From Octopus sinensis (Eukaryota), in NCBI RefSeq assembly GCF_006345805.1, contig NC_042997.1, positions 57,784,001-57,848,000 of the forward strand: DNA of 64,000 nt, written 5' to 3'. Below, one piece after another: positions 5,573 through 64,000 of the stretch. Both the position numbers and the translations under genes were made by a program. Under the pieces are notes generated by a model. That model searched no databases and had not been told where the DNA came from. It was given only the letters and a program-made list of their open reading frames with translations. Numbering within the stretch: position 1 is the first letter of the stretch; each line of letters starts with the position of its first letter.

Positions 5573-5948
5573 GGCACAAGAGTGGCTGTGTGGTAAGTAG
5601 TACCAACCGCATGGCTCTGGGTTCAGTGCCACTGCGTGGCACCTTGGGCAAGTGTCTTCTATTATAGCCTCAAGCCGACCAAAGCCTTGTGAGCGGATTT
5701 GCTAGACGGAAACTGAAAGAAGCCCGTCATGTATATATGTGTGTGTGTGTGTCTGTGTTTGTCCCCCCACCATCGCTTGACAACCAATGTTATTGTGTTC
5801 ATGTCCCTGTAACTTAGCAGTTCAGCAAAAGACACCGATAGAATAAGTACTAGGCTTACAAATAATAAATCCTGGGGTTGATTTGTTCGACTAAAGGTGG
5901 TGCTCCAGCATGGCTGCAGTCAAATGACTGAAACAAATAAAAGAAATG
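5573..5948 (+). mobile_element. Full-length tRNA-derived SINE (abundant octopus family)
   Basis: A-box gtggctgtgtggtaag, B-box gggttcagtgcc, central (TG)n, 3' gcagtcaaatgactgaaac tail. Confidence 0.85.
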
Positions 5949-6229
5949 GAAAAGTAAAAGAAAAATCTTCACACTTTTTCACATAATCCTTTATATGTGA
6001 AATACCAGTGATATGCTGAATGTCCATCAGCAATATTAGAAGACAGACAGCCATGCAGTGGTATGACATATGGTAGATGAAAGCCTTCTTTTTAAGAGGA
6101 AAAACGAAGTTGGAAGAGTGATGAAGAAGTTTTGAATACTTGTGGTTGTCGTAACCGATACTGTGACAGTTTTGTATGTGTATGTGCATAAAGATATAAT
6201 TAAAACAATACATATACACCCACGTATAT

Positions 6230-6237
6230 GTACATAC

Positions 6238-6296
<59 letters not shown>

Positions 6297-6300
6297 CAAA
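6230..6300. repeat. (TA)n/(CATA)n microsatellite (others at 28-59, 21245-21305, 40630-40680, 52485-52508, 54115-54155)
   Basis: Direct inspection. Confidence 0.95.
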
Positions 6301-6338
6301 TGTATTAGTATAGCGCTCAGGAATAGAAATAGAACAAG

Positions 6339-6376
6339 TCTTTTACGTTTCGAGCCTACGCTCTTCGACAGAAAGA
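6339..6376 (-). ncRNA. Minimal type I hammerhead-like motif (variant core CUGUCGA) in a Penelope-type repeat remnant
   Basis: Minus strand reads tcttt CTGTCGA a gagc-gtag-gctc GAAA cg TA aaaga: perfect stem I (5 bp), perfect stem II (4 bp), palindromic AC/GU stem III. Confidence 0.55.
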
Positions 6377-7639
6377 TACACAGAAAAAAAACAAGGAAAG
6401 AAAAAAATGCGTGTAGGAGCTAACGATCTATCATATATATATAAAGCAAAGTCTCATGGTGTGAATTTTCTAAAACTACTTTGGGGACAAACTGTTTTCA
6501 CAATGAATTCCAATTTATTTGGAATCTACTTGATCTGAAGCGTATTTGTAGAAAAGAAATATTTGATTTTCTCAAGGTTATGAAGAAGCAAATCATTGGG
6601 GCACAATTGTGTAATATGCCGAAATATTTATATATATAAACAATGATGTATATAAAACTAACTCTGTAAAAATGTATGTGTGTGTGTATATATTTGTACA
6701 TTTCTGTATTCATTTATACATGTATATATATAAGTTTCAGAAGATATTAGAATAGTGGAATAAAAGTCAGTCATAACACAACATCTTCCAAAAATCTATT
6801 TCCTTAATTTTTAACTACTGTTTCTGGCACACATATTTATGCAATTTTGAAGTATTTAAAAAATTATTTGGAAATTAGAAAGAGAAACGAATGGTAGATT
6901 CGGACTTTCTGTATTTTAAAACCATGAATTAAAAAAAAATTTTGTGTGTGTCAAATTTTTTCTCCAGAAGTTCATGGCTTCATAGGAATAAGCATGGAAA
7001 ACTGCATCAAGATAAGCAATTTTCAGATTTTTTACTTCCTTTTAAAAAATGCAGATTTTGTGAACGAAACAAACTAGATCCTGAATAAGAAATGAATGTT
7101 TAATATGACAAATTTTCAGATTTTTTTTACATCATTTTAGAAGGGGGCTGATTTTGTGACTCAAACTAACTAGATCCAAATACAGTTCTATTAAATACAC
7201 TCTATTTCTTGAGCATAAAAAATCCTCTTCTCAGGTGACAATAACTTATATGTTAGATTGTTGCACAAGCAGTTTTGATAAGGGAAATTGGAAAGGTTTA
7301 AATTAATTTCATCAGTATTTACCAAAGAGCATTCTTTCGATAGACAGCATGTTGATCTCATAAGTGTCACTTGGTGGAAATAAATGCCATTACCAAACTT
7401 TCAATTTGTTATTTTTTTTTTTTGGGGGGGGGGGGGTTGCATTTCAATTTGTACACCTGTACTCCTGACTGCTTACAAGTGCATATGTAAAACGACATCC
7501 TTTATTTTTTAATCATTGAGGTCTGTTATTTCTTCTAAGGCAGAATTATTTTCAAGGCAAAGAAGAGCTTAGATTTTTTTTTCATTAAAAATATGAAAAA
7601 AAACAAATTTCTTAAAAAAAAAAATGAAAATCAATGTTG

Positions 7640-16400: not shown

Positions 16401-16516
16401 TTCTGCCACTAAATAATGGTGTTTTAATTTTCTTAGTTATCTTTTGATTTTATTCACACCGGAAGCGTGAAGAACGAATATTTGGCTTAAATGCAAGTTT
16501 TTTTTTTCCTCTGCAG

Positions 16517-16546
16517 GTCTCGGGTCTCTCACATGTGGATGTGGTG
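16517..16546 (+). other. Candidate short non-coding leader exon
   Basis: Strong acceptor tttttttcctctgcag| and donor GTG|gtatgt; no coding potential. Confidence 0.4.
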
Positions 16547-16638
16547 GTATGTGTAAGCATACACTGCATGTGTGTGTGTGTATGTATATATATATAAGCA
16601 TATAGTTTATATGTATATATTGCTTATATGTATGTATA

Positions 16639-16987
16639 TATATCGCATAGACATGGTTTGTGTATGAATATATCGCATAGACATGGCTTGTGTGCATATG
16701 TCGCATAGACATGGCTTGTGTGCATATATCGCATAGACATGGCTTGTGTGCATATATCGCATAGACATGGCTTGTGTGCATATATCGCATAGACATGACG
16801 TGTGTGCATATACACGGTTTATATATGGGCATATGTTGCATATACATGGTTTATATGTGGGCATATGTTGCATATACATGGTTTATATGTGGGCATATGT
16901 TGCATGGACATGGTCGGTATGTGGGTATATGTCACACGGACACAGTCGATATGTGGGTATATGTTGCACAGACACAGTTTGTGTAAA
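16639..16987. repeat. Minisatellite of 28-bp then 32-bp units (about 12 units), grading into cryptic TA/TG repeat to ~17540
   Basis: tatatcgcatagacatggcttgtgtgca repeated, then tatgttgcatatacatggtttatatgtgggca repeated. Confidence 0.95.
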
Positions 16988-18044
16988 TGTATTTCATATA
17001 GCTTATGTGTATATGTATATTGCATATATATAGTTTATATATGTGTATGTATATTGCATGTATGTTTTACATGTATATATAGCTTGTATATGTATACATT
17101 GCAGGTATATGGTTGTGTGTATATATATATTGCATATACATAATTGGTATGTATATATATATATATGCTGTATATTGATGTTTACTGCTTATACAGTTTG
17201 TTTGTGTGTATATATATATAGTGCATATATGCAGCAATTATACACTGTAGTATACATATCTGAACATCGTATGTATGTATGGTGTACATATTTACTGCAT
17301 ATATTCATATACAGCTTATATATTGTATATGCATGTACTGTGTATCATATATATCCATGTATATATTGCAAAAATATATATGCATACATACAAATATATA
17401 TTATTGAATGTTACGGATATGTATATCTGTAAGTGTATATATATGTATATGATTGCAATTTTAAACTAATACATGTAAACATAGTTTAGAATTGTAATAT
17501 TGATGTGTGCATATATATATACACACATGCACATGTGAATATAAAAAGTATATATATTTAGGGATGCACATATTCCGTAAGTGAAGTTTTAATTCATATT
17601 ATGAAAAGAAAATGTCAAAATGATTTTTCAGTCATTTTAACATTGCTCATAATGTAATTTACTTTTGTTTACATGTTTATATTGATCTTGGGGTGAATCT
17701 GTAGGGAAAAGATGCTGATGAAGCATTCACATGTTACTGACATTGAAGCAAATGGATCTGAAATTTAAAAAAAAATTTTTGTTTTCAAAGTATTACGAAC
17801 GGCTTGTTTTGAAACTATTGAGAAAGGAGTTGAGCTCTGCTTACTTCAACAAGCTTTCTAAAGAAGGAAAAATTACTTTTTCTAAAAGTAACTGTTTTCA
17901 GCCACTTACATAAGTTGGGTGTAAGTTGGTTGGTTTGCTAGTCAGTGTCTAAGTACCGGCTTTACCCCAAGTTCTATACACTTGCTGACAGTCTAATATT
18001 TTCTTTATTTTTCCCTCTTCTGCCACCAACACATTTTTAAATAG

Positions 18045-26436: not shown

Positions 26437-26752
26437 ATCATCATCATTTAACGTTCGCTTTCCATGTTAACATGGGTTGGACGATTTGACTGGGGTCTGG
26501 CGAACCAGACTCCAATCTGATCTGGCAGAGTTTCTACAGCTGGATGCCCTTCCAAACGCCAACCACTCTAAGAGTGTAGTGGGTGCTTTTACGTGCCACT
26601 GGCACGAGGGCCAGTTTGGTGGTACTGGCAACGGCCATGCCCAAATGGTGCTTTTTACGTGCCACCTGTACAGGAGCCAGTCCAGTGGCACTGGCAATGA
26701 CCTCGCTCGAATATTTCACATGCCACCAGCACAAGTGCTAGTAAGGCAAAAA
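26437..26752 (-). mobile_element. RTE-related 3' UTR/SINE copy
   Basis: Begins atcatcatcatttaacgttcgctttccatg; same subfamily deletion pattern as the 63655 copy. Confidence 0.85.
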
Positions 26753-29700
26753 AAAAAGCAACTGGCAATTAAAAGTATTTTATCTGAAAATAAGCTTTAA
26801 AAAAGGTATTTGGATTCATAGCTGTGGCATAATTATATCAAACTGAAGCCAATATCATCTTGGAAGGAAACTTACCAATTATCAGCTAATTAGTTTATTA
26901 GCTGGTGAATAAACTTTGTTTACAAATTTTAGCCCATTTATTGCTTTTGATTTATTTTTGTGAAAGTGAATAATATTTGTTAGATTATGGGAATTTCTTA
27001 AGAGGACAGTAAATATAGTTTTCCACACTAATGAATTTCTTAATGTACTTGATCACTTTTGATAATGGTACGACTTAGAGGTATAAATTCCTTATTCTTG
27101 CTAGCCCTTGTTACCACATTGAGATTATTTTTGACAACCATATACAGATAGGAAAGAGATTTTATATCCACTTGTTTTACAATTTTGCCATTCAATTTTT
27201 GTTTCATCTTTCCAACTGGGATCAAATTCTGTAATCTTGTAAAATGGGTTGGTTGGCTTGCTAAATGATAAGAACTGTATGACTTCATGGGTGACCAAAT
27301 CATTATAGCACCTGGCAAGTAGTCAAGCTCACATTCTTGCATTGTGTTAGTCAAACCTACCTCACACAATGTAGGCATCCGCATACCTTAATGTGTTGGT
27401 GATGGCAACAACCACCACTAGAATTGACAAGTTCTATTCAATAAGGATTGTATGATTAATGCTAGAGCAAGTTATGAGCATTGACCCTGTGGATTCAGGT
27501 TGTAGGTGACATTTTTAATAAGTAATTCCTGTGAAGAGTCTCAGCTTTTGATATTGCATGGGTAAAATTTTTAATATGTGCCAAAGTAGATATAGAAATA
27601 GAAATAATAGATTTAAAATTTTTGCATTTCATCTTATATGCAGTCTATGCTTCAGATATGTGAGGAGATGAACCATAGTTGAGCAAACCATTGATCCAGT
27701 TGTTCCAGTTATGATCACTCTATACACCTAGGAGTGTATTGCCCTATTGTTCTCTCTTAAATTGTTAGATTATATGTTCCAGCAACTACAAAGCTTTTCC
27801 CACTGCTTGTCTATGCACATATCATGGTGTGATATGGTGTCTCAACATGTTGCTTCCTCTAACTTGTATTTTGCTTTAATTTAATGTGTATCCAAGCAAT
27901 CAGAAACTATTGTCCAAGAATTGGTTTATATTTACCATTTAATAACTGTTTTGATGATTAAAATATTGAACAGTGTCCTAAACATGTAGATTTGTCATCT
28001 TTTTATTGTTTACATATTTTTAGTTGAGCAAAAATTACTTTAAAGGGGCTTCTGTTTGGTTGCCTGACCTGTTACAGACAGCAGCCAAATTTTCCTCAAA
28101 TCATACATATAACAGCATGTTGAACTGCTAAACAATTGGTTCAGTAACTTGTTTACTGTTCAATTAATACTAATTAGGAAAATATTTATTTCTGAATTTT
28201 AGGTTTGAATTAAATTATATTTTGCGAGGGAGACTGTAAAAAGTAACACGATGTAGGGTATTTATTTTGTTAATCTCACAAAGGTTTAAAGCTAACTGAT
28301 ATGAGCTTCAAAACAAAGGATTTGGCTCATCGTTGTTTCTATGTGTTAGAACTTTGCACTATTAGGTTTTAAAATTTGCTTCTTTCTCCCTGGCAATAAC
28401 ATCTTGATTCTTGTGAAGCTCCTATTTTATTTAATGGAAGTGCCAACATAGCTAAAATATAAAGGCATTTCAAGTGGGATATGTTATTGTGTTAACTAAC
28501 CATTGTTTATTACACTGGTTATTTAATTAATTACCAAAATAGTTATTTTTTTTTATCTTTCATTTCTGTTAAACAGCAGTTTTGTGAGAACCACTATAAA
28601 ATGCAATTTACTTATGCCTTTAATATATAAATAAGCAGCTTAATTAATTATTCAGTAGCTCAGTTAGCCTTGTTGATTTGTGCTTGATTATTTGTTTCTT
28701 AAACATTTGGCATTCAGATTACTCAGTCAAATGTTATGATGTTTATTTATTCACACTGTTTTGAATTAATCTTGCATTATCTCATAACTTGATATTTTCG
28801 TAATGTTATGGTTATTTTTAGAATGACATTGTAGAATAGATGTGAGAGGCTGGATCTGGTTTGTTTGAACATAAAACAGTAGGATATTTGGGTTAGATAT
28901 GGCTCAAAATGTTACGCCCAGATCAACCTTAATTGAGCAGACCCATGATAAAAAAAAACACTGTAATCACACATTTTTGTATATATGACAGTAGAGTATG
29001 ATTTGAGGGACATTGCTTGCTATTTACATGAGCTTCACTGGTGACTTAACCTTTTCCATTATGCAGTAGTTTGGTTATGTAGGATTCATTGTAACAAGTT
29101 GGGATGTTAAAGAATATCAGTAGGTTTGGTAATGAGTATAACTGGCAGTTCCTTAGCATTTGTTATGTGGTTAAAATACCTTTATAGATTTTGAGCTGGG
29201 TATGAAATTTGATGACTTATTTTGTGCCTGTCTAGAACAAGTGGAGGTAGTGGATTTCTGTATTTGTAATATGTTTAGGAGATTATGAGCAGTTGAACAT
29301 GTTTTACTGATAATCTAGTCATTAAAATAGATTGTTTGTGTCTTTATACAGCTACATTATGGCAATAACATGTTTAATTTTTTTATTAATATTTTCTATC
29401 TTGGGTCACTTGATACAATGTTGAAGCTAAGTTCCAAAGAACCAATAGATCATTGGTTTCCTTTTTCCTAAATTTAAATATTTTGAATTTTCAAAAGTAG
29501 AAGAAAGTGAACCATTAAAAAAAAAAAAATCTTTGGAAGTATCAAATATTACAATACATTCTTTGATATATAACCAAGGCACTCACAAAGTATTGATGTG
29601 CTTTATTCAGAAATGTAGTTCTATAGCATATAGGATGATTCAATGCTTTAAAAAATTCATGGATCAACTTTGGAATGGAACATCCTGTAAATTCACTTGT

Positions 29701-31365: not shown

Positions 31366-32335
31366 ATGAATCGAGGTGGAGTCAGTCAATGGTCAGGTGG
31401 CAAAGAAATGTCAGGCTTTGATTACAATTCAAATTATGGCAATCATTGGAATTCTGGAGCAACAGCCTGGGATGGTATGGGAAGCAGCAATCTTATCAAC
31501 AGCAGCAGTAACAGCAACAACTTTTCTACTAGCTATGGAGCTGGATTATCTAGCAATGTTAGTGGTTACAAACGTCAGTGGCAGTCAGCTAGCCCAGGAG
31601 AAGAGAAAAAAAGTAACAAAATGATTAAATTAAACCAGTCATATGGTAGTCAAGGAGATCAATACGGTAGTGTCGATGCAATGTATTCCAATCAATCTGG
31701 TCAATACAATACAAACTGGAATGACTCAAAGAGGAAAAGTGCTACTTCAAATTGGGGATCAGTGGCACAATATAATAATAGTAACAGTAACAGCCATTGG
31801 CAGGGGAAATCTCCACAAAAGGGTATGAAAAACTTTGGATATCAAGCAGGATATCAGGGTAACGATTATTGCTGGGATTACTCTGCTGAACAATATGTTG
31901 ATGAATCAGACTTTGGTGAATTTGGCGCTGGTTATTTTGATAACCAAGGAGCATTTGATGATTATTATGTTGGTGATCAAGCTTATCAGTATGATCAAAA
32001 ACAGCGTGGCGGTAAATTTGGTGGCCGAGGACAACGTGGTTCTGCCTCCAACCGTGGTGGACGTATTGGAAACCAACCAATTTGGGGCCAATGGCTTACT
32101 GATGAGAACTCTTTGACATTTGGCAGTGCTGGGTCTAGCCCTTATGGAAGAGGCCGACGTGGTGCAGGAAGAGGTGGTGGTGGTGTTGGATCTGAAATTA
32201 ACCGCATCAGAGATGCTATCCGAACTGTTCAAGGTTACAGCGACATTGATCTAAGTTTCTTACTTGATGCATCTGATACCTTCAGACAAGGGAATCAATA
32301 TAAAGGGAAGTCTGGCAGAGGAGCTGGTGTTGATG
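31366..32335 (+). CDS. NKRF: NKRF-like protein, coding exon 1 (low-complexity G/N/S/Y/Q/W and RGG-rich N-terminus)
   Basis: Acceptor ctatttgcag| ending at 31343. An in-frame TGA at 31345-31347 upstream of ATG 31366 fixes the start. The ORF is open to donor GATG|gtaagt (phase 1), which joins the next exon in frame (G+CA = Ala). Confidence 0.88.
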
Positions 32336-32499
32336 GTAAGTTACTACTATATTTAAATATATACATCATCATCATCATGTAACTTTATCCAGTTGCCATT
32401 TTTGTAAAATGTTCAAATTTAATTTACATAATAAATTTCTGTGTTTGTGTGTGAAAAATTAATTTTATTTATGATTTAAGTATTTTAAATTTCTTTTAG

Positions 32500-34105
32500 C
32501 AAAGAGAGGTGCTGCTTCACGAGGAAAACTACAGCGTGGAGGTTTGGCAAATTTTGGTGATCGAGGTTCATTGAAAGCTGGTCTACGAAATCTCCAGGCT
32601 GCTGCAAAAGGATTATCTCAAGGAGTCAAAGGAAAAAATGCAAAAGCTTCCCCTTTGCAAGGAGTTAATTTACCTGCCGATACGTCAAAAATGACAATAT
32701 CTGAAAAAATAAAATACTTTACCCTCTGGCTCAAGCGTGATTACCCCAAATGCAATGCTATTCAGACAATTGAAAATGCTTTGACTAGCTGCAAACTTAA
32801 ATTAGATCATTCTTATGATGTTGAAGAGTTGGTGCGCATTGGTGGCCGATCTATGTACACTGCCAAACTAACAGTTGAAGGTAAATTCATGGCTAGAGCT
32901 GTAGCTGCTAGTAAAAAAGAGTTAAAACATGAAGTTTATAAAAAGGCTGTTGAAGTTCTGACAAAGCAGTCTGTTGCGTCCATTGTAAAACAGAAAGATC
33001 CAGGTCCAGAAAAAATGAGAGCAGAATTGACTAATTCTCTTACTAAGAATAAAACTGAACCTTCCTGGGAGAAAGTGGTAGATATTTGTAAGGAAAAAGG
33101 TCTGAGTTGTGCTCCAGAAAAAACGTTTCATGGCAATGAGAAACAAGTGGGTTTCCAACAGTTAATTGCACAGCTCAAAGCTACCAATCCTCAACCTGAC
33201 AATGAAATTTCTGCCTTCATCCAAGCCTTCTCTGCTTCACATTGCACTTTAGAACATACTTATACTCCATCAGATTCCAGATTAGCTAATGGCAAAGCTG
33301 TATTTTATGGCACAGTAACCATTGGAAATGTGGTGGTTGGACGAGGTATGGGTTGTAAGAAGAAGGATGCTAAACATGAAGCCTATAAACAAGCTATTGA
33401 ATTCATCAAAAATAATGCTCTTGAAATTGTAATGAAGGGTAATAAAAAACAGCCTGTGGAACATTCTGGTTTCAACATATCTAGTACTGAGGTGAAATCT
33501 CCAAAAACAACTGGAGAAACAGCCACTTTCACTGATTTATCATCTAAACTGGAAGCATTAATTAAATTAATCAAAGAGTCAGCACATCGAGCAAATACAG
33601 TTAATGCTGTTGATACAATGGCTGTCCAGTGTTGTTTGTCACCAACTTGCCTTTATCGTAAAGTTGAAGGTGACATGCAGAAACGGACGCTAGCTTGTGA
33701 ACTCTATTTGGACAATCTTCTAATAGCAAAGGGTGAAGGTGACACCAGAAAGGATGCCCAAATTGGTGCCTATACAAATGCATGGGAGGTTCTTAGTACC
33801 AGTACACCCAACTATCTGATCAGTGAGCATCATACTCTCACCATGAAAGATAAACTTGATCCAATGGTAATTGATATAGTTGTGAAGGGATTTGGAAAAT
33901 ATGGTGAATCTAATTTGCCAAGACTTCGCAGGCTCAGAATTCAAAGTCCAGAAAATTCCAAATCTATTGAGGATTTAGTAATTATGGAACATGAAGACTG
34001 GAAATATGATCGGCAGCGGCATGCTTTCTGTATTCTCAACAATAGTTCTACAATGTGTGGCATGTTAATGGAATGGGAAATAGAACCACAAGGAGATGTT
34101 TTCAA
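32500..34105 (+). CDS. NKRF: NKRF-like protein, coding exon 2 (three complete dsRBD-like domains at ~32754-32963, 33201-33410, 33594-33797 and the start of a fourth)
   Basis: Acceptor ttcttttag|C, 1606-nt open frame, donor AA|gtaagt (phase 2). dsRBD helix-2 motifs: SKKELKHEVYKKAVEVL, CKKKDAKHEAYKQAIEFI, TRKDAQIGAYTNAWEVL. SIEDLVIMEH...FCILNNSSTMCGM resembles human NKRF DIKDLVVYEN...CTLNDTAQFNRM and ILNNSASFNKM (recalled, not searched). Confidence 0.9.
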
Positions 34106-34888
34106 GTAAGTAGTTTTCTATTTTTTTTATCTGTTGCTAACAAATATTTCTCGAAGTTAAAAATACTCAATTAAAGGTTTTTTTTGAGTTTTTAAAAATA
34201 AAGATGTTAGCTAAACTAAGCAAATTGTATTACTTTACAATTAATTTCCTTAACAAATTTAAAACACACGTCAAGGATTTGGTTGCATGGTTAGAATATG
34301 GTGATTTTTTTTTTTTTTTGTTTGTTTCAGGATTGGGTGATAATCATTAATGCACAATCCCTGAAGTTTGTAAAAGCTTCTAACAAATCTTATCTTGCAA
34401 AATATGTTGGTGTAGTGTTATTTTAATATAGCTGACTAACTGTATCTATTTCAGTTTTTGAACTGGTGTTTTACTTTGAGAAAAGCTTAAACATTACATT
34501 TTTTTTTATGTATCAGGCAGAATAAAGAAAAAGTATCATTTTAACAGCTTAAAATGTGAATAAAATTCTGTTGAGAATATACTATAATAGAATTTCTAAA
34601 GCAATAGTGAATGCAAGTTTTCTAGTTTATTTTACATGATCTTGAGTAAGAGAAGGCTTCAATGAGAATGTTGTTTATTTACAATTTATTCCAATTATGA
34701 TATTAAAGTAATAATGAATATATCTTGAATATTTGTTAGTCAAATACTGGTTTTATACTACCTATTTTACTACTTGCAAAATCAGTATAATTTCCAGTTT
34801 TGGTGATTGGGGTGCACTAATTATAAAGGCTATAGTTCTGTCACTGCTCAGAACTTTTGATAGTCATTTTAAATAACATTAACCAGTT

Positions 34889-35540
34889 TTCATCATCATC
34901 GTCGTTTAACGTCCGTTCTCCATGCTAGCATGGGTTGGACGGTTCGACCGGGGATCTGGGAAGCCAGAAGGCTGCACCAGGCTCCGGTCTTATCTGGCAA
35001 TGTTTCTACAGCTGGATGCCCTTCCTAACGCCAACCACTCCGTGAGTGTAGTGGGTGCTTTTTACGTGCCACCTGCACTGGTGCCAGGCGAGGCTGTCAT
35101 CGGCCACGGTCGGATTGGTGCATTTTACGTGCCACCTGCACGGAAGCCAGTTGAGGCGGCACTGGCATCGGCCACGATTCGGATAGTGCTTTTTATGTAT
35201 CTCCAGTCCAGGGGTCCATGCATCTGCCGGGTGCCAGTCATAGGATTGGTTCAATTTCGATTCCAATTTCACTTGCCCCAATGGGTCTTCGCAAGCAAAG
35301 GTGCCTGTCGTCGGATGAGGTTCGATATCGACTTCGCTTGCCTCAACAGGTCTTTGTGTGTCCAAGGGAGGAAAGGCATGCATAAGTGGGCTGGACTCAC
35401 TTGTCCTGCCTGGTCTTTTCATGCACAGCATATTTCCAAAGGTCTCGGTCGCTGGTCATTTCCTCAGTGAGACCTAAAGTTCGAAGGTCGTGCTTCACCA
35501 CCTCGTCCCAAGTTTTCCTGGGTCTACCTCTTCCACGGGT
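34889..35540 (-). mobile_element. 5'-truncated RTE-clade LINE 3' end in NKRF intron 2
   Basis: Minus strand 35540-35397 encodes TRGRGRPRKTWDEVVKHDLRTLGLTEEMTSDRDLWKYAVHEKTRQDK* (RTE ORF C-terminus). This is followed by a 3' UTR with internal ttttacgtgccac subrepeats and a (GAT)n tail. Confidence 0.88.
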
Positions 35541-35784: not shown

Positions 35785-35908
35785 ATGTAAGATGCTTATC
35801 CAGAAGAAACTAATAGCTGAGGCCTCAGCATCTTCGAAGAACAATGCTCGTAACACTGCTGCTGCAATTGCTTTGATGAAACTCTATCAAACTCAAGATG
35901 TTATCAGA
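35785..35908 (+). CDS. NKRF: NKRF-like protein, coding exon 3 (C-terminal half of the fourth dsRBD)
   Basis: Acceptor tttttcaaacag|A completes AAA (Lys). Encodes CKMLIQKKLIAEASASSKNNARNTAAAIALMKLYQTQDVIR, matching NKRF CKVILESEVIAEA..KK..KYEAAGEAVKTLKKTQP. Donor AGA|gtaaga, phase 0. Confidence 0.88.
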
Positions 35909-38879: not shown

Positions 38880-39362
38880 CTTTAAAAAATCTGCCCTCAA
38901 CAAATTTTCTCTGATTCATGTGAATATGGTAAAGTGGATGTTAAACAAATGATGTTTACATCTTTTAAAAATGAACAGATCAGTTCACTCAAATATGCAT
39001 TCATCATTGTTTTTACGCCTTTACAATGAACCACTACTCTGTTGGACATAAATTTCAACACTGCTAAAAGTACCAACTGAATGTGGCCGATGCCAGTACT
39101 CACAGACTGGCTCTTATGCCAGTGGCATGTAAAAAGCACTATCCGAACATGATCAATGCCAGCCCTCCTGACTGGCTCCTGTGCCAGTGGCATGTAAAAA
39201 GCATCCACTACACTCTCGGAGTGCTTGGCGTTAGGAAGGGCATCCAGCTGTAGAAACATTGCCAGGTCAGATTGGAGTCTGGTGCAGCCGCTGGCTCTCC
39301 AGACCTTAGTCAAACCGTCCAACCCATGCCAGCATGGAAAACAGACGTTAAACGATGATGAT
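38880..39362 (+). mobile_element. RTE-related 3' UTR/SINE copy in NKRF intron 3, inverted relative to the intron 2 copy
   Basis: Ends gcatggaaaacagacgttaaacgatgatgatgat; reverse complement of the 34889-35200 segment. Confidence 0.85.
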
Positions 39363-39589
39363 GATTGTGTAACATATGTAGGCATTATTGATGTGTGTTT
39401 ATTACTACTCATGAATTTTCTTGGTTTGTTTATTATTTGTTACCCTCTCATCAAAAAGATTCTAATATCAGTATGGAAATAGATTTATCAGTGTCAGTCC
39501 TTCATTTAATTTCAGCATTTACGACTAAGACCATGCTAAAGCACTGTCTTGAAAATGGAAAATTTTGAATATTTTTATATTATTTTCAG

Positions 39590-40159
39590 ATTGTGAGGAG
39601 AGATGACTCAACTCGCTGGATTCCCTATGAACAGATTGTTGAACAAGGAAAAGTGTTGGAAAACGAATGTTCTGGAAATATTGACCTTCTTGGAGGGTTG
39701 CCTATTTTTGAAAATCTGCCTGAAAACAAAGATGGGAAAAATGAGAAAAATGCTGATAGTGATGGTTTGAACAAATTTGCTGTCAAATACATGGAACAGT
39801 TAATGAATGAGTATGTGGAAAAGGAGACTCTGGATGATCTCATTTTTGGTCCTGGCATCACTTCTCTTGAAAGGAAAGTAGTCACAAATATTGCTTTCAA
39901 CTTACATCTGAAAATGGATGTCAGGCAACATGAAGGCAAGAATTACCTGTGCATCTCCAAAAAACTTTCTCCAGAAGAAATAAGTTATTTCCTCAAAGTG
40001 CACAACACTGGGCATGGCAAATATGTTTTGGTGCCCAAAGTGGAATTACCTGGTTCAATGGAGACATCTTTCAGCGACAATTCCTCCACAACCAAAACCT
40101 CAGAAATATCTAATTTGCAAGGAAAGAAAGATTTTACTATGGATGTCAGTGTGAATTAG
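39590..40159 (+). CDS. NKRF: NKRF-like protein, last coding exon (degenerate R3H domain and NKRF-type C-terminal tail)
   Basis: Acceptor tattttcag|ATT, phase 0, stop TAG at 40157-40159. DDLIFGPGITSLERKVVTNIAFNLHLK...YLCISKK..PEEI..FLK....GHGKYVLVP aligns with the NKRF C-terminus DLTFSRELTNDERKQIHQIAQKYGLK...YLVVGRK..KEDLLDQLK....VGHYELVMP. Confidence 0.88.
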   Translation: MVRRDDSTRWIPYEQIVEQGKVLENECSGNIDLLGGLPIFENLPENKDGKNEKNADSDGLNKFAVKYMEQLMNEYVEKETLDDLIFGPGITSLERKVVTNIAFNLHLKMDVRQHEGKNYLCISKKLSPEEISYFLKVHNTGHGKYVLVPKVELPGSMETSFSDNSSTTKTSEISNLQGKKDFTMDVSVN

Positions 40160-40621
40160 TGTGTTTTAGTTTTCTGACTCTTTCCACCAATCTCCTACTC
40201 TAATCTAAGTATATAACTATCTGCCATTAAGTCATCATTTTTAATCCACCACTTTGCTAATCATATTTCCACTTCAAAAACTAAAAAAAATGGTTTTAAC
40301 AAATTTTATATAAAAATGTATATCATATACTTATCTAACTTTCTTTGTATAGTATCAATAAGGCTTTGCAATTAGTTTTAAACTCAAATCACTAACTATT
40401 CCATTATTCCCCCCACTCCCTCTTCCTACTTTTTGAAGAACAATCTAAAATTGTTTTCTATTTAATGAGAAAAAGATGTGATGCTCATTTTTTATTTTTT
40501 GCAACCCTATTGTCTGAAAGTTTATTTGAATATTTTGCAACCTTGTGGCTGTCATAGAACTGCTCTGGGATATTGGGATATTTTAAAATGTTTTTCAACC
40601 ATAGTATTTGTGCAAGCAACC

Positions 40622-40685
<64 letters not shown>

Positions 40686-41907
40686 TATGAATGACTTCAC
40701 TATACAGATGATGGATTTAGTATCATCTGCTAATTTGATGGACTTCTTAATGACATGCAGACTAAGTGAGGTTTGCTAATGTTGCTTTTCTGATTGGTCA
40801 CATTTTTGCCTCACAGATCACAAATATTTGGTTGATAAGGGTTGCCAATTTCATGCTTCTTTTTATATTAGACAAATTATTACATGCTATTTTTTATCTG
40901 ATAGCTCATTTTAATTTTCTGCTTTCCTCTCTCTCTGTTTTACCAAAATTTATTTTCTAAAATATGAAAGACAATGTATTGATTGTATTTCCATTCCAAA
41001 CTCTAAAATATTTTATCCATCAATTTAACATTATCTCGGTTTTGAGCTGGCAATATATTTTCTAAGTTTCTTTGTTGCTTTTACCTGTTTTGATAAGTGG
41101 TTTGGGTTTACTGCTTCTTCATTTAACTTCAGGTATGCATTTTTGGCACATTTGAAATATGTACCCTTATCCTCATTTATTTTGATATAATGATCATATC
41201 TCTGTTCTGTAAGATAAAACAGTGTATCAGTGATATAATTGAATTCACTCAATAATTCCAACTAAAATAAGTCGTATAACTGGTCTAGTATACTATCATT
41301 GATGAAGGACTTTACCCTATGATACTGCCTAGTATTGCCATTGACAGTTAATAGTATCCTTAAGAAACAAAGCAGACATCAGAAAAAGAAGCTGGGCAAT
41401 TTTTGTTATTAATTCCACTTTGAGAAATTATTAACAGAATCTAGTTTTATTTTATAATTATAGAATTATAAAGCCTGTTTGATAAAATTGATTGGGATAA
41501 ATTGCTTAAATGTTTGTTCTGAAAATGTACATTTAAAGCAGTTTCTTCTAAATTTTTTTTTACTGAAGGCTAAATATTTCGGAAAGCTGACATCTGGATA
41601 CAATTTCTGTTACAAAACTACTTTTCTAGGATGTACAATTAGAGGAATTTTTGCTTATAAAATGTCTCTTGACACTGACATTGAATGTGAGCTACTTGTT
41701 GTAGAGTTGGCTTCAATTGTTGGTATTTAGAGATTTCTATTATACTGTTGACTAGTTAGTTTGTTCCTAATGTATCTAGTAGTCTTTTTATCTTTAGAAT
41801 TTTGGAGATGATTTACTATAGCAAGTTGATCACAGATGTCAGATGACACCCTTTGTGCTACCATCTTAAATCTTTTCGGAGTGTTTTCTACCCATAAAAA
41901 AATATAA

Positions 41908-46285: not shown

Positions 46286-46645
46286 TAGAGTGTGTGTGTA
46301 TATATATATCATCGTTTAACATCTACTTTCCATGCTGGCATGGGTTGGATGGTTTGACTGAGGACTGGTAAGCCAGGAGGCTGCACCAGGCTCCAGTCTG
46401 ATCTAACAAGGTTTCTACAGCTTGATGCCCTTTGAGAGTGTAATGGGTACTTTTTACATGCATCCGGCATGGGGGCCAGTCAGGTGGCACTGGCATTGGC
46501 CATGTTTGTATGGTGCTTTTTATGTGCCACTGGCACGGGAGGCGGTACTGGCATCGACCATGCTTGAATTGTGCTTTTTATGTGCCACTGGTATGGGAGG
46601 CAGCACTGGCATCAACAACATTCATATGGTGCTTTTTATGTGCCA
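46286..46645 (-). mobile_element. RTE-related 3' UTR/SINE copy abutting a Penelope pseudo-LTR fragment
   Basis: atcatcgtttaacatctactttccatgctggcatggg... with four ttttatgtgccac-type subrepeats. Confidence 0.8.
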
Positions 46646-46678
46646 CCAGCACGGAACCCAGGTTCAAGATTTCCTCAA

Positions 46679-46722
46679 GACACCTGATGAAGGCTGGAGG
46701 GTATATAAGCCGAAACATGTTA
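46679..46722 (+). ncRNA. Degenerate minimal hammerhead motif of the same Penelope pseudo-LTR family
   Basis: gacac CTGATGA a ggct...agcc GAAA c, but the cleavage-triplet region is shortened (gaaacatgtt versus gaaatgttgtgat at 57872). Confidence 0.5.
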
Positions 46723-47849
46723 ACAAGATCAGTGCAAATATCTGTCAAATGTAAATAATTTTAAAAAATTATAACTAATTTCTGATATATACTGAGGTAA
46801 CGGAATTGTTAGCATGCTGGATAAAATGACACTAAGCATTTTATCCATCTTCACATTGAGTTTGATATCATCAACAAGCATCTTTTCCCAAAATTTCAAT
46901 CCTTGCCTCTGTAGTAAAAAGGATTATTTTATACATTTGTAGATTCTGAGTTGCTCTTCAAAACAAATCCAACAACCATTACATGATAAAAATTAGTGGG
47001 GGCTAACAAAATCCAAGCTAAAATGAATGTCTTGCTCTCTACATGTTAGAGCAATGATTCTCAACTGGGATTCCATGCAAGCAAAATAGTAAATTGGAGA
47101 TCCAAAGTAGTATTTTAAGAGTACATGAAAAAATTTTACTTTAGTTTCATTTATTGCAAGAAACAACTTAGTTTCTTTAATGTTTTACATAGTTCAAACT
47201 ACACAAGTGAATGTTTGAAAAGCAAAATAGAAATTTTGAAAGAAGTTTTGATTAAACCAGTTTTTAAACATTGAATGGCTATGTAAGTCTACCAGAGCAA
47301 AATAGTAATCAAAGTGGGTTCGTAGGTAAAAGATGGTTGAAAACCACTGTTGGAGTATATGACAAGCATTATAACTTTATTTTTGGCTTTCTTTCAAATT
47401 AATTTTTCTGAATTATATTCTATGAGTATGCTTTTTTTTTTTAATATCAGATTCAGAATCTGTTAGTTTCTCCAGAATTTTTTTTTTCCAAAATGTTTTT
47501 CAAACAAAATAGCTCAATCAAATAGGTAGGAAATGTTATCATTAAATGCTAACTTTTCCATGCTTGCATGGGTGAGGCAGATTTTCTATGGCTGGATGCC
47601 CTTCTTGTCACCAACCTTCATCCATTTTTAAACAAAGTAATATTTGCCCATGGCCAGACATTTTACACAGAAGACTGGAAAAAATATTACTTTTATGAGG
47701 GTAGGCAGAAAAATGTATAGGTTGACTATGAAGGAGTGATGCTAGAGCTGTGAAATCTTGCATGCATTAATTTCAGCTTTTCTTATTAATAACTGTATTG
47801 TTTCTTTCCCGGTAAACATCTGAGAGTTCAAAGAATTCAAAGGTAATTA

Positions 47850-48910
47850 GTAGCAACATCTCTTGAAAATCCACAAAATTTGGCATCATGTTGTTAACAA
47901 GCACCTACAGAAAAAGGGTTTACCTACCAAGGACATTCATGCTGACATGGTTGCTATATTAGGGGATGATGCTCAGCATTATCAACAGGGTGAGTCTTGA
48001 AGATGACACAAGGTCTAGATATCCTACAACTGCACTACTGAGGAAATCATTGATCGTATTTACCAAATAGTGATGGATGACAGACGATTGGCTATAAATC
48101 AAATAGCCAATGCAATTAGCATATTTCTTGAGAGAGTTGAGAATATTCTGCACAATAAACTTGGCAAGACGAAGGTTCTGTTCACTGAGTGCCATGTCTT
48201 CTGACACCTGGTCAAAAGTGCAGCAGCCTGATTACATTATGAGAAAATCTAACATTGTTTTAGGCAGATCCAGCTGGTTTCCTTGAATGTTTCCTAACCC
48301 AGGATCAGTGTTGCATCACTTTGAGCTAGAGACAATACATGCCGTGGAAATACCCCTCCTCACCTGCTGCAAAGAAGGTCAAAGTTGTTTCATCTGCTAG
48401 GAAAGCGATGGCCTCAGTTTTTGGGATGCAAAAGGCATTGTGTTTATGTACTATTTTCAAAAGGGCCATACTATCAATGAAGAGTACAATGCCAACTTGC
48501 TGAGGTAGTTACAAAACGCTATCAAGACCAAACACTGAAGAAAACTGACAAAAGAGGTTTTGTTTCATCAAGACAATGCTCCAGCACAGCTGTAGCGTGT
48601 GACTGGCATTGAACTGGTTGATCACCATCCCTATTCTCCTGATTGGCCCCTTTTGACTATCATGTTTCCCAAAATGAAAATGCACTTGGCTGGGAATCAG
48701 TATCGTGATGATGATGACGTCATATCTGTCTTTGATGACATCTTTGACCAACAGGATGAAAGCTTCTTCACGTACGAGATCCAAGCATTGCAACACCGAT
48801 GGAAGAAGTGTGTGGATCGCTAGGGGGTTATGTTGGAAAATAAATCTCATTTGGTTACATTTCATGAGAGTATCTTGGTCAGCCTATGAACTTTTCAGCC
48901 GACCCTTGTG
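47850..48910 (+). mobile_element. Mariner (DD34D) transposase pseudogene with right TIR
   Basis: KGLPTKDIHADMVAILGDDA, VFWDAKGIV, FHQDNAPA, LVDHHPYSPD, WKKCVD; right TIR-like gaacttttcagccgaccct at ~48888-48907. Confidence 0.9.
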
Positions 48911-51800: not shown

Positions 51801-53165
51801 GTATGTTTGATTAATTTAATATTTCAGTATTATTTTATTGTAATAATAATCATTAATCCTTACAGAATGCATTCACGAGCTATAATTGTTTTCACTGAAT
51901 TTCAAGGTATTGCTATGGTCAAACTATACTAGATGCATTACTCAGTATCAGATTGTTTGACAACTGATGGAAGACTTTTTCTAGGTAATTTATTTTGCGT
52001 AGGAAAGGGTCCGATTTCTCTGTGGAGCCGAAGGATTATCATGTTTTAAATTAAGGTATTTTTGTTTACTTCTTAAACATGTCCAAAATTGGCGAAAAAA
52101 GAATTATATGGATTAAAATCTATTTTGTCTTCTCGTTAAAGGAGGAGTGTAAAAAAACAAAACATTATTATTGTGTGTGTGTGTGTGTAGTATTTGCTAG
52201 TTTGAGAACCACAGGCTTAAAGATTTTTTTGTTGGTGCGACCCAACTTCTTAACATTATTTTATTCTTTTACTTGTTTCAATTATTGGATTGCGGTTGTG
52301 CTGGAGAACCGCCTCGAATATTTAAGGCTTAGGGTTACTTATTTTAAGTCCAATATTTTATCAGTGTCTCTTTGCCGAACCGCAAAGAGAACTTTAGGAA
52401 GACGTTAACAAATCAACGCTAGTTAAGCAGTGAGACACATACACATCTATCTCTCTCTCTCTATATGGGAAAGTGGGCGTTAAAACTATATATATATATA
52501 TATATATGTAATTAAGATTCAGTTGAATTAGGTAATTAAATAGAGGCACCAAGCCAGTTCAGCATAGTCCGTGTAGCTCTAAGTTAGGTGAACAAAATGC
52601 AAGGATATCCTTGTTACTTATTTATTTGTTTGTTTGTTTGTATGTATGTATTGTTTGGATGAAGTCCTGCTCTCGGTTGCTGAACTGGCTGTCCTCCTCA
52701 ACTGAGCCTAGAGCGACGGCGTTTAACATTATTGTAAAGAATCCACTTTTCATCACCTGTAACAAGCCAGTGTAAAAATGTTGCTTGAAAGTGTCGCGAA
52801 AGCAATGATTGACAACAAACAGCTCGCCGTTGTCGATTCTCGGGAAACAGCTCGTGAGGAATCCATTTTCCAGCCACTGAAACTTTTCCAATATGTTTTA
52901 GTTGGTGTACCATTGTTGTATGGGCCATGTTTAACTGTTCTGCAAGTTCCCTAGCAGTACAAGAGCTTCCACTATTACGGAATCAAGTTTTTTTGGACGA
53001 CCCTCTTTTGGCTCTTCTTTCAAAGTGAAATCATCACTTCGGAAACGGGAAAACCATCTCCTGCAACTTCTTATGTGATCTTTAGATAGGACAAACATGG
53101 TCGTAAAATTTTCTGAGAATTATGTCTAGAAGTTAGATAATCTGAAAGAAAATAGTACAAATTAG

Positions 53166-53893
53166 GGCGATCTTTCGACGAAAGATTGCCTAGGGCGATC
53201 TTTCGTTTGTAGTAGCACGTTTCCGTCGATGATTTCCGTAAAAAACTTTTATTTTTTTACATATAGGCTTGCGGGAACATTTGAAGTAATGAGAGCGAAA
53301 GAGACTAAGAGAAAGCGATTTTATGACGAGCGAATTTCTTTTTGAAGTTACCGAAGCACATATACACATACACCGAGTAAAAAATTACACTGAATCGGCC
53401 ATACATACACACACACACATACATAGATACATACACACACACACACATACATGCAGACATACATATACACATACACCGAGTAAAAAATTACACTGAATCG
53501 GCCATACATACATACATACACACACACACATACATAGATACATACACACACACACATACATGCATACATACATATACACATACACCGAGTAAAAAATTTC
53601 AGTTATCTCTCTCTTTCACACATTACTCTCTCTGTCTCTTCACACACACTAACAGAAGCACTTCACTTACACAACATACTGTCTGTCTCCCACACCCCAT
53701 CAAACACACACACGCACACACATGTACATCAATGCTTTGATAACTTCAAAAGAAATTCCCTCGTCATAAAATCGCTTCCTCTTAGTCTCTTTCGCTCTCA
53801 TTACTTCAAATGTTCCCGCAAGGCCATATGTAAAAAAATAAAAGTTTTTTACGGAAATCGACGGAAACGTGCTACTACAAACGAAAGATTGCC
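53166..53893. mobile_element. Fold-back/MITE-like element with ~155-bp inverted arms (53194-53350, 53741-53893) and an adjacent 25-bp fused-end palindrome
   Basis: The arms are near-perfect reverse complements (ggcgatctttcgtttgtagtagcacg... / ...cgtgctactacaaacgaaagattgcc). Flanked by an 18-bp direct repeat gaaaatagtacaaattag (53148-53165, 53894-53911). Confidence 0.85.
53359..53600. repeat. ~103-109 bp tandem repeat (2.3 copies) built on CATA/CA microsatellite
   Basis: caccgagtaaaaaatt recurs at 53371, 53474 and 53583. Confidence 0.9.
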
Positions 53894-58510: not shown

Positions 58511-59789
58511 ATGCTTATTGTTATGTATTAGAAGTAGCAGTTATATTTTTCTAAAACTATACTCTGTTATCTTAAAAACAATGAAGGACATAATGGATAG
58601 TGTAGGAAAAATAGCTTTGTTTGGCAAGAACAATTTAAAGAAGGAAAGCAAAAACGAGATATATGACAATCAACAGAAAATGATGGTCATTAGTCACATT
58701 CTAAAAAAACAGCAACAAAAACCCCAGATGTACAACACTTATTTTAATCACAATGAATTGTTATCTTATTCTGCTCACCTGCTTTACATGAAGAATCGTT
58801 ACCCTAGTGAATATAATTTGTATAATCAGATAACACACATACATGCCTGCATGCATATTTAATGTGCATATTTCATCCTGTATAGCTCAGAGGGCTTGAC
58901 ACGATTTGATGAATCTAAGACCACATCATGTTTCAATGTCTGCTTTGGGATGGTTTCTACAGTTCGATACCCTTCCTAATGCCAACCACTTTACTTTTCA
59001 TGGCACTAGTGAGGTTGCCATGGAAACTGGGAGACTAAGATCCCCTTCAAATAAGTGGAGGCTATTATATAAAGAGAGGTAGTTTTATGCTATTAGAAAA
59101 GGAGCTTAAGTGTGAAAGAAGGGGCTAGAAAAGAACAGGTTTCTTGTTGTAGAGGATCTTCATAGTCACTCACATTTTGGATATGCGCCTTTATACTTGC
59201 TCCATATACGACATACAAGGCGATATAATTAAATTTTGCATTTAGATGGTTAATGGTAAGTGTAATCAACCAGGATTACCAAGTTAAAACCTAACTTCCA
59301 AGCCAAACGATATATAAAAAACAAAAATAAAAAGCCAAACATTTAATATGGTGCAATATTACATCAGTTTCATTATCGTCATCATTTGACATCTGTTTGA
59401 CATGGAGGTGAGATGTTCTATAAGTGTGTGATGGGAGATGGTTTGAGATAGGGAAATGTAACTGTAGCAAGTGATAAGAATAGCTCAGGGGGTGGGGGAG
59501 TAGGTACGGTGGTAGATATGTGAAGGCATTGAGGGTGACATAAACATGGGTGGAGGAAGAATGTGTTGGGAAGATGGGTTGGCAGATGCATCCATTCATA
59601 CATACATATATGTATTTCATACATACATAATATATACTTGCGGATATACAAACATATTACATACATACATTCATGTATATATATATGTATGTACATGCAT
59701 AAGATAGCCTAGACTTGCATGTATCTTAAAATATGCTTGAAATACCTTTTATGAGCACTGATGTCTCAGCTCAATAAAGATTAACCAGA

Positions 59790-60050: not shown

Positions 60051-61499
60051 GTCAATTTTCCAACTTTTTGATTAGAAACAACAGCAAGAGTTGCAAATAG
60101 CATGAACCAAGTGTCAGTGTATCTATGGTAGTTGTCTTTCAAATGTATAGTGTATTTCATAATATAATTGGATCAGGGCTCTGATGTTTGTAGTGGAGTT
60201 TTTGTTTTATGGTTTAGGCAGGGTTGCCGGAATAAAACCTAATTGTGAATCCAAACAATTCATGAAAAACAGCACTACCCATCAAAGCCAATCATATCAG
60301 AATATGTTTCTGATATTTATGCCATATGAAAAGTTCTCTATTATCTGCAAGACGTATCAGTCATCCTCCTTGGAATAAGTAATCTCCTGCGTAGATATTA
60401 TGAGATATGAAATCTTTTAATATTTTTGAGATGGAGAAAAAGGCAGTGAGGAATTGTTAGCACACCAGGCAAAATGTTTAGTAGTATTTGGGCTTTCATT
60501 CTTTCAGGGTTGATAAAATAAGTACCAGTTGAGGGCTGGGGGAAAATGTAGTTGACTTATCCTCTCCTCTGAATTTGCTGGCCTTGTACCAAAGTTTGAA
60601 ATTTATATTTTTTTTAGATGGAGCAAAGTCCTTACAACATCTTAAATAAAAGGACATATGAGATAATTGTAGCCCTAGACCTAAAAGATGGTTGAAAAGC
60701 CATAGACCATAGGATCTTCAGGTCAATACGACCATCTGCACCATAAACAATAAATAGCATGACCACTATCACCACTACCACCACCACCACCACCACTGAT
60801 ACAACACAACCACTATAATATTCACTAACAGTAATACCACCTCCACCATTATTACCAACACAACCATAAATGCTATCATTATAGTAATAACAAATAATAG
60901 ATCTTCATGTATTTTGTTGATGAATATTCGGTTGTTCGATCAACTAAACTACCTGTTTGTGAATTAGCATGTAAGTGGTTGAGTATTCTATAAACATCTA
61001 CCCATAATGTAATTAATACTCAGATGGAATCAGTGAGGCATCAGATGCAATAAAGGTGGACCTATAAAACACATGTACAAACCATCCAAGAAATTTCCAT
61101 AGTTTCTTTCAATCCAATTTCACTCACAAAGCTTGGGTTGACTCAAGGCTATGATAAAAGATACTTGCTCATGACACATCTCAGTGAAATTGAACCCAGG
61201 ACCTTATAATTGTAAAGTTAATTTCATAAGCATTTAGCTTTGCTGTATTCTTAATGCTGCAGTTACTTCTAACATTTTCATCATCAACACAATTTAGAGT
61301 ACCAACACACCAACACTAAAACTAATACAACCAACATCAGCACTACTAACTCTTTAATGACCAACCAGCAGCAACAATAGTACCAAGATAGCAAAGTCAA
61401 ATGTCAATATGTCAATATCTTTGTCTACATATGGATGGTATATGTCAAAATTTATAACTACTTATGGGGTAATGTTACAATGTAATGAAGTGGGTGCTT

Positions 61500-61780
61500 T
61501 GATGTGTGTGTGTATCTGATGGGAGGCAAGAAAAAATAAGTGCTAGAAATAGAGGAATCAATATCTTTGTCTGTATCTTTGTGTTTTTACTTGGTCCCCA
61601 CCATTGCCTGACAACAGGCGTTGGTGTGTTTACATCCCTGTAACTTAGTGGTTCCACAAAAGAGACCAATAGAATAAGTACCAGGCTTAAAAAAAAGTAC
61701 TGGGGTTAATTTATTCAACTAAAAATTCTTGAAAGCAGTGCCCCCAGCATGGCCACAGTCTAATGACTGAAACAGTAAAA
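61500..61780 (+). mobile_element. 3' half of the same SINE family
   Basis: gtccccaccattgcctgacaac...gagaccaatagaataagtaccaggc...gtctaatgactgaaac. Confidence 0.75.
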
Positions 61781-62949: not shown

Positions 62950-63357
62950 TACTCTTTTACTTGTTTCAGTCATGTGACTGTGGCCATGCTGGAGCACCAC
63001 CTGTAGTCGAGCAAATCGACCCCAGGACTTATTCTTTGTAAGCCTAGTACTTATTCTATCAGTCTCTTTGCCGAACTGCTAAGTTACGGGGATTTAAACA
63101 CACCAGCATCGGATGTCAAGCGATGTGGGGGGGGGGGCACAGACACACAAACATGTATACACACACATATATATATATATATACATATATATACGACGGG
63201 CTTCTTTCAGTTTCCGTCTACCAAATCCACTCACAAGGCTTTGGTCGGCCCGAGGCAATAGTAGAAGACACTTACCCAAGGTGCCACGTAGTGGGACTGA
63301 ACCCAGAACCATGTGTTTCATAAGCAAGCTACTTACCACACAGCCACTCCCACACCT
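62950..63357 (-). mobile_element. Full-length tRNA-derived SINE, same family as 5573
   Basis: Reverse complement collinear with 5573-5948. Confidence 0.85.
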
Positions 63358-63654: not shown

Positions 63655-63950
63655 TCATCATCATTTAACGTCCGCTTTCCATGCTACCATGGGTTGGATG
63701 ATTTGACTGAGGTCTGGTGAACCAGACTCCAATCTGATCTGGCAGAGTTTCTACAGCTGGATGCCCTTCCTAATGCCAACCACTCCGAGAGTGTAGTGGG
63801 TACTTTTACGAGCCACCGGCACGAGGGCCAGTTTGGTGGTACTGGCAACGGCCATGCCCAAATGGTGCTTTTTATGTGCCAACTGCACAGGAGCCAGTCC
63901 AGCATATTTCACATGCCACCAGCACAAGTGCTAGTAAGGCGATGTGGTAA
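63655..63950 (-). mobile_element. RTE-related 3' UTR/SINE copy
   Basis: catcatcatttaacgtccgctttccatgc...; near-collinear with 26437-26752. Confidence 0.85.
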
Positions 63951-64000
63951 TGATCAAAAACAGTAGGCTTTCCCATCCACGTGGGACTCGAGCCTTCACC

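Follow-up and report, generated by a model that had tools for sequence, protein, structure and literature searches.

Which parts of NKRF persist under selection when the modules that recruit its enzymes are absent? Work on NKRF has treated it as an adaptor through which XRN2 and DHX15 reach pre-rRNA: the human protein binds and activates DHX15 and recruits XRN2 to pre-rRNA (PMC5435916, PMC7132122), with the G-patch binding across DHX15 and stimulating it and the XRN2-binding domain (XTBD) binding XRN2 (PMC5435916, PMC7132122, PMC10511037). A natural relative holding the RNA-binding core only would speak to this question, and the window, i.e., the whole stretch of 64,000 nt of Octopus sinensis DNA analysed here, contains a candidate. 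In the initial annotation, its terminal exon was described as belonging to an NKRF homologue that has lost its G-patch and the R3H histidine and is presumably uncoupled from the DHX15 pathway.

The NKRF-like gene is the sole evident gene in the 64 kb and has relatives in other molluscs. It consists of four exons on the + strand with compatible splice phases and encodes ~1089 aa:

31366..32335, + strand: exon 1, ATG followed by ~323 codons of G/S/N/Y/Q-rich low complexity with RGG/RG boxes, GT donor at 32336
32500..34105, + strand: exon 2, AG acceptor at 32498-32499 (phase 1), GT donor at 34106 (phase 2)
32697..32966, + strand: dsRBD-type module 1, residues 66-155 of the AF2 model of exon 2, helix-helix-strand-strand-strand-helix, with a DSRM_2 match
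33135..33413, + strand: dsRBD-type module 2, AF2 residues 212-304, the best Pfam dsrm stretch, KKxxAK-like basic motif retained
33537..33800, + strand: dsRBD-type module 3, AF2 residues 346-433, unaligned in the hhalign comparison of alignments A3 and A2 (see below)
33993..34105, + strand: first part of dsRBD-type module 4, AF2 helix 498-518, continuing into exon 3
35785..35908, + strand: exon 3, completing dsRBD-type module 4, flanked by an AG acceptor and a GT donor, ending in phase 0
39590..40159, + strand: exon 4 (terminal), helix, variable linker, R3H-fold domain and tail, stop codon TAG at 40157-40159

An in-frame stop lies seven codons before the ATG of exon 1, which has a Gly content of 17% and 15 RG/GR dipeptides. 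AF2 modelled exon 2 with three full dsRBD-type modules and the beginning of a fourth, and Pfam matched it to dsrm (E 1.2e-15, three stretches) and DSRM_2 (E 6e-9); for exon 3, Pfam gave E 0.001 with DSRM_2 and E 0.008 with dsrm. Preceded by an AG acceptor at 39588-39589, exon 4 is a single unbroken frame from 39590 to 40156. The window exons were searched one by one, and P0001, a transcript-derived orthologue of 1100 aa and the closest match of exon 4 (phmmer E 1.9e-83), served as proxy for the full-length protein. P0001 is encoded without introns on RNA-seq contigs of 4.6-4.8 kb, with an in-frame stop upstream of the ATG. Its residues 1-1098 are collinear with the four window exons in tblastn (1-325 with exon 1, 328-860 with exon 2 at 80% identity, 845-905 with exon 3 and 903-1098 with exon 4).

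To place this protein relative to NKRF, we used three alignments: A1 for the exon 4 domain, A2 as a profile of canonical NKRF-type proteins, and A3 for 11 full-length relatives of the window protein. A2 was reached from the Branchiostoma protein P0027 via single-unit proteins named NF-kappa-B-repressing factor in their sources. Its best match in the PDB was the human NKRF chain 6SH6_B (E 4.7e-23), followed by the PAXT-1 XTBD and, lower, the SMUBP-2 R3H domain; because human NKRF ranked first, A2 is a valid stand-in for NKRF. Aligned by hhalign, A3 and A2 matched with 99.7% probability and E 1.8e-26 over 430 collinear columns; the aligned span opens in a dsRBD module, takes in the last dsRBD and the post-dsRBD segment, passes the position of the G-patch and reaches the C-terminus. 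Module 2 aligns here with a dsRBD of NKRF-type proteins and module 4 with their last one. Module 3 is without counterpart in the aligned canonical profile and is therefore extra.

A different origin would be that of an unrelated protein with multiple dsRBDs which gained an R3H-like fold independently. Exon 4 is indeed left unscored by the Pfam R3H model, and sequence searches of the PDB reached only SMUBP-2, at E 1.7. Such an origin would have to account, however, for a collinear match of 430 columns that takes in two dsRBD modules, the post-dsRBD segment, the R3H domain and an NKRF-specific tail, for a pairwise BLASTP match between P0001 and the Branchiostoma NKRF-like protein over 375 residues (E 3e-13, database size 11 sequences), and for faint Pfam matches to DSRM_CARF. 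We regard it as very unlikely. In the large phmmer search with exon 4, in which just 37 of 1.84 billion representative proteins passed E<=0.001, P0027 was the sole canonical-type match (E 1.6e-5, on the R3H domain). On these sequence comparisons the exon 4 protein is a relative of NKRF, and the homology proposed initially holds against canonical NKRF-type proteins, which formed the comparison set in place of the human sequence as query.

Exon 4 can be divided as follows (codon 1 = 39590):

39590..39658, + strand: conserved post-dsRBD segment, RRDD..W motif and start of a helix, common to the family (alignment A1)
39659..39766, + strand: linker, acidic and Asn-rich, occupying the G-patch position of canonical NKRF (hhalign)
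39767..40039, + strand: R3H-fold domain and NKRF-type tail, exon 4 residues 60-150, signature residues altered
39872..39886, + strand: RxxxH position, five codons, R95 retained and T99 in place of His
40040..40156, + strand: C-terminal tail, Ser/Thr-rich, conserved with P0001 (pN 0.065)

The post-dsRBD segment sits opposite the equivalent segment of NKRF (hhalign, A3 vs A2) and is modelled by AF2 as a helix at residues 13-27 with pLDDT up to 96. The linker behind it differs between family members in both length and sequence, is not conserved in A1, and is the fastest-evolving part of exon 4 (pN 0.27). Residues 31-60 have a pLDDT of 52-59 in the AF2 model of exon 4, by which the linker is likely disordered. 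Searching Pfam with exon 4 at E<=10 returned no family whatever, neither G-patch nor R3H. The G-patch columns of canonical NKRF-type proteins were turned into an HMM, which recovers its own source proteins at E 1e-25 to 1e-59. Against exon 4 this HMM gave no alignment even at Z=1; its best E against the six-frame translation of the whole 64 kb was 4.6, and it had no match in any family member. Thus, the G-patch is absent according to Pfam, to the NKRF-specific HMM and to the profile-profile alignment alike, and the profile searches that might have revealed one here detected none. The G-patch-less segment had been placed at ~39653-39766; its bounds are slightly generous, as the part from ENECS to NEK comprises residues 24-53 (39659-39748), while the sequence strings and positions reported for exon 4 are present on the + strand ORF, with R95 at 39872 and T99 at 39884. 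In the profile alignment, hhalign set a Gly-containing stretch of the P0001 linker against the G-patch core; that this stretch is a G-patch vestige is improbable and was rejected, for it has no score or statistical support and is absent in other members.

If the gene model were at fault, a G-patch exon could have been missed in intron 3 or elsewhere. Intron 3 is long (3.7 kb) and contains repeats, but P0001 reads through the exon 3/4 junction without additional residues, none of the six reading frames of the 64 kb is matched by the G-patch HMM, and the scallop gene is collinear with the window gene. The chance of such an artefact is, in our estimate, negligible, and the earlier assertion that no missed exon can supply the G-patch is confirmed by the continuity of P0001 over this junction as well as by the uninterrupted frame of exon 4.

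A third absence goes beyond the initial annotation, namely that of the XTBD; the RGG-type N-terminus is a further feature that it had not included. Pfam returned no match whatever for exon 1, and none to the XTBD (PF11952) for exons 1 and 2 or for the full-length relatives, whose transcripts are complete at the 5′ end. An XTBD HMM derived from A2 likewise reached no better than E 5.7 in the six-frame translation of the window and found none in family members.

The terminal domain retains its resemblance to the R3H domain and tail of NKRF. Exon 4 residues 60-150 were matched by hhalign of A1 vs A2 (97.5% probability, E 5e-12), and an HMM of the NKRF R3H domain and tail scored exon 4 at E 9e-13 (45.5 bits). 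In the AF2 model, pLDDT exceeds 90 for residues 61-130 and is then 84-81; the elements of the R3H fold, a three-stranded sheet against two helices, occupy residues 84-138, mostly with pLDDT >90. Foldseek returned the R3H domains of SMUBP-2, SPAG7, PARN and KhpB as best matches of the model, with a target TM of 0.82 and an rmsd of 1.6 over 60 columns for SMUBP-2 (1MSZ). As modelled, the terminal domain is an R3H fold. At the sequence level, exon 4 did not reach the Pfam R3H model (PF01424) at E<=10, searches with exon 4 alone against Pfam and PDB sequences gave no useful match, and the profile of the C-terminal domain found SMUBP-2 in the PDB at a non-significant E of 1.7, in the right register. 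The only family member with any Pfam R3H match was P0009 (E 0.0027, 18 bits, cut-off 26.8). Beyond the domain, pLDDT drops from 72 to 43-53 in the tail (residues 151-189).

The Thr in place of the R3H His, also noted initially, can be read directly from the sequence, with R95 and T99 at the RxxxH position, and the register of this position was confirmed against SMUBP-2 1MSZ. According to the alignment column counts, in which the window protein is included, the His column holds H in 12 of 12 canonical proteins and in none of 37 family members, where R (17), K (6) and T (5, among them the window protein) are found instead. The Arg of RxxxH is itself not conserved in the family: R occurs in 12/12 canonical proteins and in 6/37 members, and the window gene is one that keeps it. 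The family also varies freely at two more polar columns that NKRF conserves, and it retains the columns of the hydrophobic core.

These absences are shared throughout the family. All 36 relatives found among the 1.84 billion representatives are without a G-patch, and every relative checked lacks G-patch, XTBD and the R3H His (0/37). The named members are the bivalves Mizuhopecten yessoensis and Tegillarca granosa and the gastropods Gigantopelta aegis, Haliotis asinina, H. rufescens, H. cracherodii, H. rubra and Lottia gigantea; their proteins bear only the names "uncharacterized", "hypothetical" or "DRBM domain-containing". The family corresponds to RefSeq "uncharacterized protein" entries such as Mizuhopecten LOC110451341 and is represented in alignments A1, A3 and A4. 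Exon 4 matches the scallop protein at E 2e-19 (phmmer), and the window gene is collinear with the scallop gene in tblastn and tblastx; long phmmer matches comprised dsRBDs only. A word search with exon 2 returned nothing, but it covered lengths of 287-912 aa and so could not have reached relatives of ~1100 aa. With the family the window gene shares an RGG-type N-terminus, four dsRBD-type modules, the RRDD..W segment, a variable acidic linker, an FGPG-type R3H fold and a GKY..LVP tail. The family is present in bivalves and gastropods and is therefore older than their split. Hence the loss of G-patch and His is not peculiar to the window gene, as the wording "has lost" suggested, and this wording should be replaced by that of an old, stable family architecture. 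Whether G-patch loss is general in molluscs had been raised as a possible objection; it applies in part only, inasmuch as the G-patch-less state is common to scallop, ark clam, abalones, Gigantopelta and Lottia.

The scallop orthologue (Mizuhopecten yessoensis NEDP02002985.1, 380295-411057) has more introns than the window gene: the equivalent of window exon 2 is distributed over several exons, and the R3H-like domain is cut by an intron of ~1.8 kb. Neither of its neighbours, an FtsJ-domain gene and a C2/PLA2_B cPLA2-like gene, was seen in the window flanks. In P0009 (Tegillarca granosa KAJ8307167.1), P0014 and P0032, the R3H-like domain stands at the extreme N-terminus of a long unrelated low-complexity protein, which looks like a fusion of the terminal exon of the NKRF-like gene with an adjacent gene model.

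The loss of three functional features might also mark a decaying NKRF copy without function. For the dN/dS check proposed initially, only pN and pS could be compared, because synonymous sites relative to P0001 are saturated (pS ~0.75); even so, pN was far below pS, at 0.04-0.18 per exon vs a saturated pS of ~0.75. Exon 3 had a pN of 0.042 vs a pS of 0.69, and the R3H-fold region (39767..40039) a pN of 0.083. This substitution pattern shows the gene to be under purifying selection. Moreover, the frame is intact through four exons, relatives have full-length transcripts, and bivalve and gastropod members are conserved with respect to each other, with core residues invariant between them. A decaying copy is thus extremely unlikely.

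Both origins named in the initial annotation, a neofunctionalised paralogue or a rewired orthologue, have to be weighed against each other. P0053 (922 aa), encoded on contig SRR23477408_22162, is of the canonical NKRF type: it has an XTBD (local HMM), dsRBDs, a G-patch (765-806) and an R3H domain (816-876) with both R and H. P0065, a G-patch-less family member of 1008 aa belonging to the P0034 90% cluster, is encoded on contig SRR23477408_8457. Because both transcripts occur in SRR23477408, a paralogue is favoured over a rewired orthologue. Within the series SRR23477403-414, the canonical gene was found in runs 404, 408, 409, 410 and 411 and the family gene in runs 403, 408, 413 and 414, each with small allelic differences between runs. 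P0034 shares 32% identity with the scallop protein and 20-25% with gastropod proteins, and the sampled organism is therefore, to judge from this sequence similarity, probably a bivalve. Counting against paralogy, the sample of SRR23477408 may contain a second organism; the two transcripts differ in GC3 (0.34 against 0.48) and correlate in codon usage at only r=0.47, which is compatible with one or two organisms.

Had the family instead been the only NKRF descendant of molluscs, XTBD, G-patch and R3H signature would have been lost once in the mollusc stem. That all named members are molluscs, all without the three features, and that no named canonical mollusc NKRF was among the search matches would fit this history. 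The co-occurrence of a canonical transcript, in one RNA-seq run, with a family member that has a scallop as its nearest named relative speaks against it, and the searches that lacked a mollusc NKRF were insensitive: starting from Branchiostoma NKRF-like proteins, they returned almost only Branchiostoma and four canonical proteins, no named mollusc, and missed vertebrate NKRF too. Literature searches for NKRF in molluscs yielded a single table entry. We consider a rewired orthologue unlikely. The window gene is probably a member of an old mollusc family of NKRF paralogues existing alongside canonical NKRF, without XTBD, G-patch and R3H signature. One more protein of the canonical NKRF type, P0054 (884 aa), comes from one unbroken ORF at 2001-4655 of a 214-kb contig from a metagenome assembly (ENA ERZ26273219, contig ctg27309).

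The mollusc family follows canonical NKRF in its layout, with dsRBD-type modules leading to the post-dsRBD segment, then the R3H fold and finally the C-terminal tail, and it has kept the hydrophobic core of the R3H domain. It differs by the absence of XTBD, G-patch and the signature residues R/H (and S/R), by an additional dsRBD-type module and an RGG-type N-terminus of low complexity, and by its length (~1000-1200 aa vs ~580-920 aa for canonical NKRF). P0027 (Branchiostoma lanceolatum XP_066287825.1), a protein of 1384 aa made of two tandem NKRF-type units, resembles the family in one respect: the NKRF-type R3H domain of its second unit (residues ~1286-1380) has Arg at the His position, like most mollusc members, whereas XTBD, G-patch and the signature Arg are retained. 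The R3H domains of SMUBP-2, SPAG7, PARN and KhpB/Jag share the fold, but in the mollusc family the name-giving R and H are not conserved and the Pfam R3H model does not score. CDKN2AIP/CARF, of the XTBD family, also combines a dsRBD of the DSRM_CARF type, the model faintly matched here, with the lack of a G-patch. CARF has an XTBD and no R3H domain (Pfam architectures, PMC10511037), in contrast to the window protein with its R3H fold and without XTBD.

Taken together, these results indicate that the mollusc family shares an ancestor with NKRF, keeps the RNA-binding core in NKRF order and is without both enzyme-engaging modules, the N-terminal XTBD for XRN2 and the G-patch for DHX15. Its members are predicted to act as scaffolds binding structured RNA through the dsRBD-type modules and the RGG region. 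They would neither activate DHX15 via a G-patch nor tether XRN2 via an XTBD, and the R3H fold might serve as a structural or interaction module, or else bind nucleic acid non-canonically via the basic residue that most members have at the His column. Judging by domain content, the protein is probably an RNA-binding scaffold uncoupled from DHX15 and XRN2. For DHX15, the uncoupling proposed in the initial annotation may fairly be inferred, because no G-patch exists at the place of NKRF's and the R3H His is replaced by Thr; it does not set the window gene apart from its family.

A bolder scenario, for which our expectation is low, is that of a second NKRF-derived lineage that arose before bivalves and gastropods diverged, dropped the enzyme modules and gained the RGG region and an extra dsRBD, to become a natural competitor of NKRF or a factor in another pathway. 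If true, the protein could sit on NKRF's RNA targets without XRN2 or DHX15, which would make it the competitor; alternatively, it could be a dsRNA-binding factor elsewhere, e.g., in the antiviral or stress RNA handling of molluscs. The family assignment gives a name and a domain map to mollusc genes now annotated as "uncharacterized". Known NKRF biology is not overturned and domain loss after duplication is common, so that the case is of moderate interest.

Outside this gene, the window is AT-rich (GC ~0.29-0.40). Inspection by eye of stop-free stretches of >=75 aa in 1-31000 and 40300-64000 yielded no further convincing coding exon, and the NKRF-like gene thus appears to be the only gene in the 64 kb. 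One interspersed repeat, with copies of a few hundred bases that are 70-90% alike, occurs in both orientations; ARAGORN found no tRNA-like gene in the whole window and thus gave no indication of a tRNA origin for the repeats:

26437-26800 (+ strand): interspersed repeat copy
34922-35470 (+ strand): interspersed repeat copy
39066-39412 (- strand): interspersed repeat copy
46308-46754 (+ strand): interspersed repeat copy
63721-63963 (+ strand): interspersed repeat copy

The introns of the NKRF-like gene contain two of these copies, one of which ends ~230 bases 5′ of exon 4. A second short interspersed repeat was recognised by eye from similar translations at 5665-5919 (-), 61478-61705 (-) and 63007-63258 (+). 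Open stretches at 48596-48820 (+) and 52701-52982 (-) resemble parts of mariner/Tc1-type transposases and are fragments as judged by eye. Finally, long microsatellite-like tracts were seen, again by eye, at 5923-6420, 16437-17432, 40590-40690, 53348-53585 and 59294-59708, and such tracts give rise to spurious ORFs rich in Y/I/C/V/M/H.
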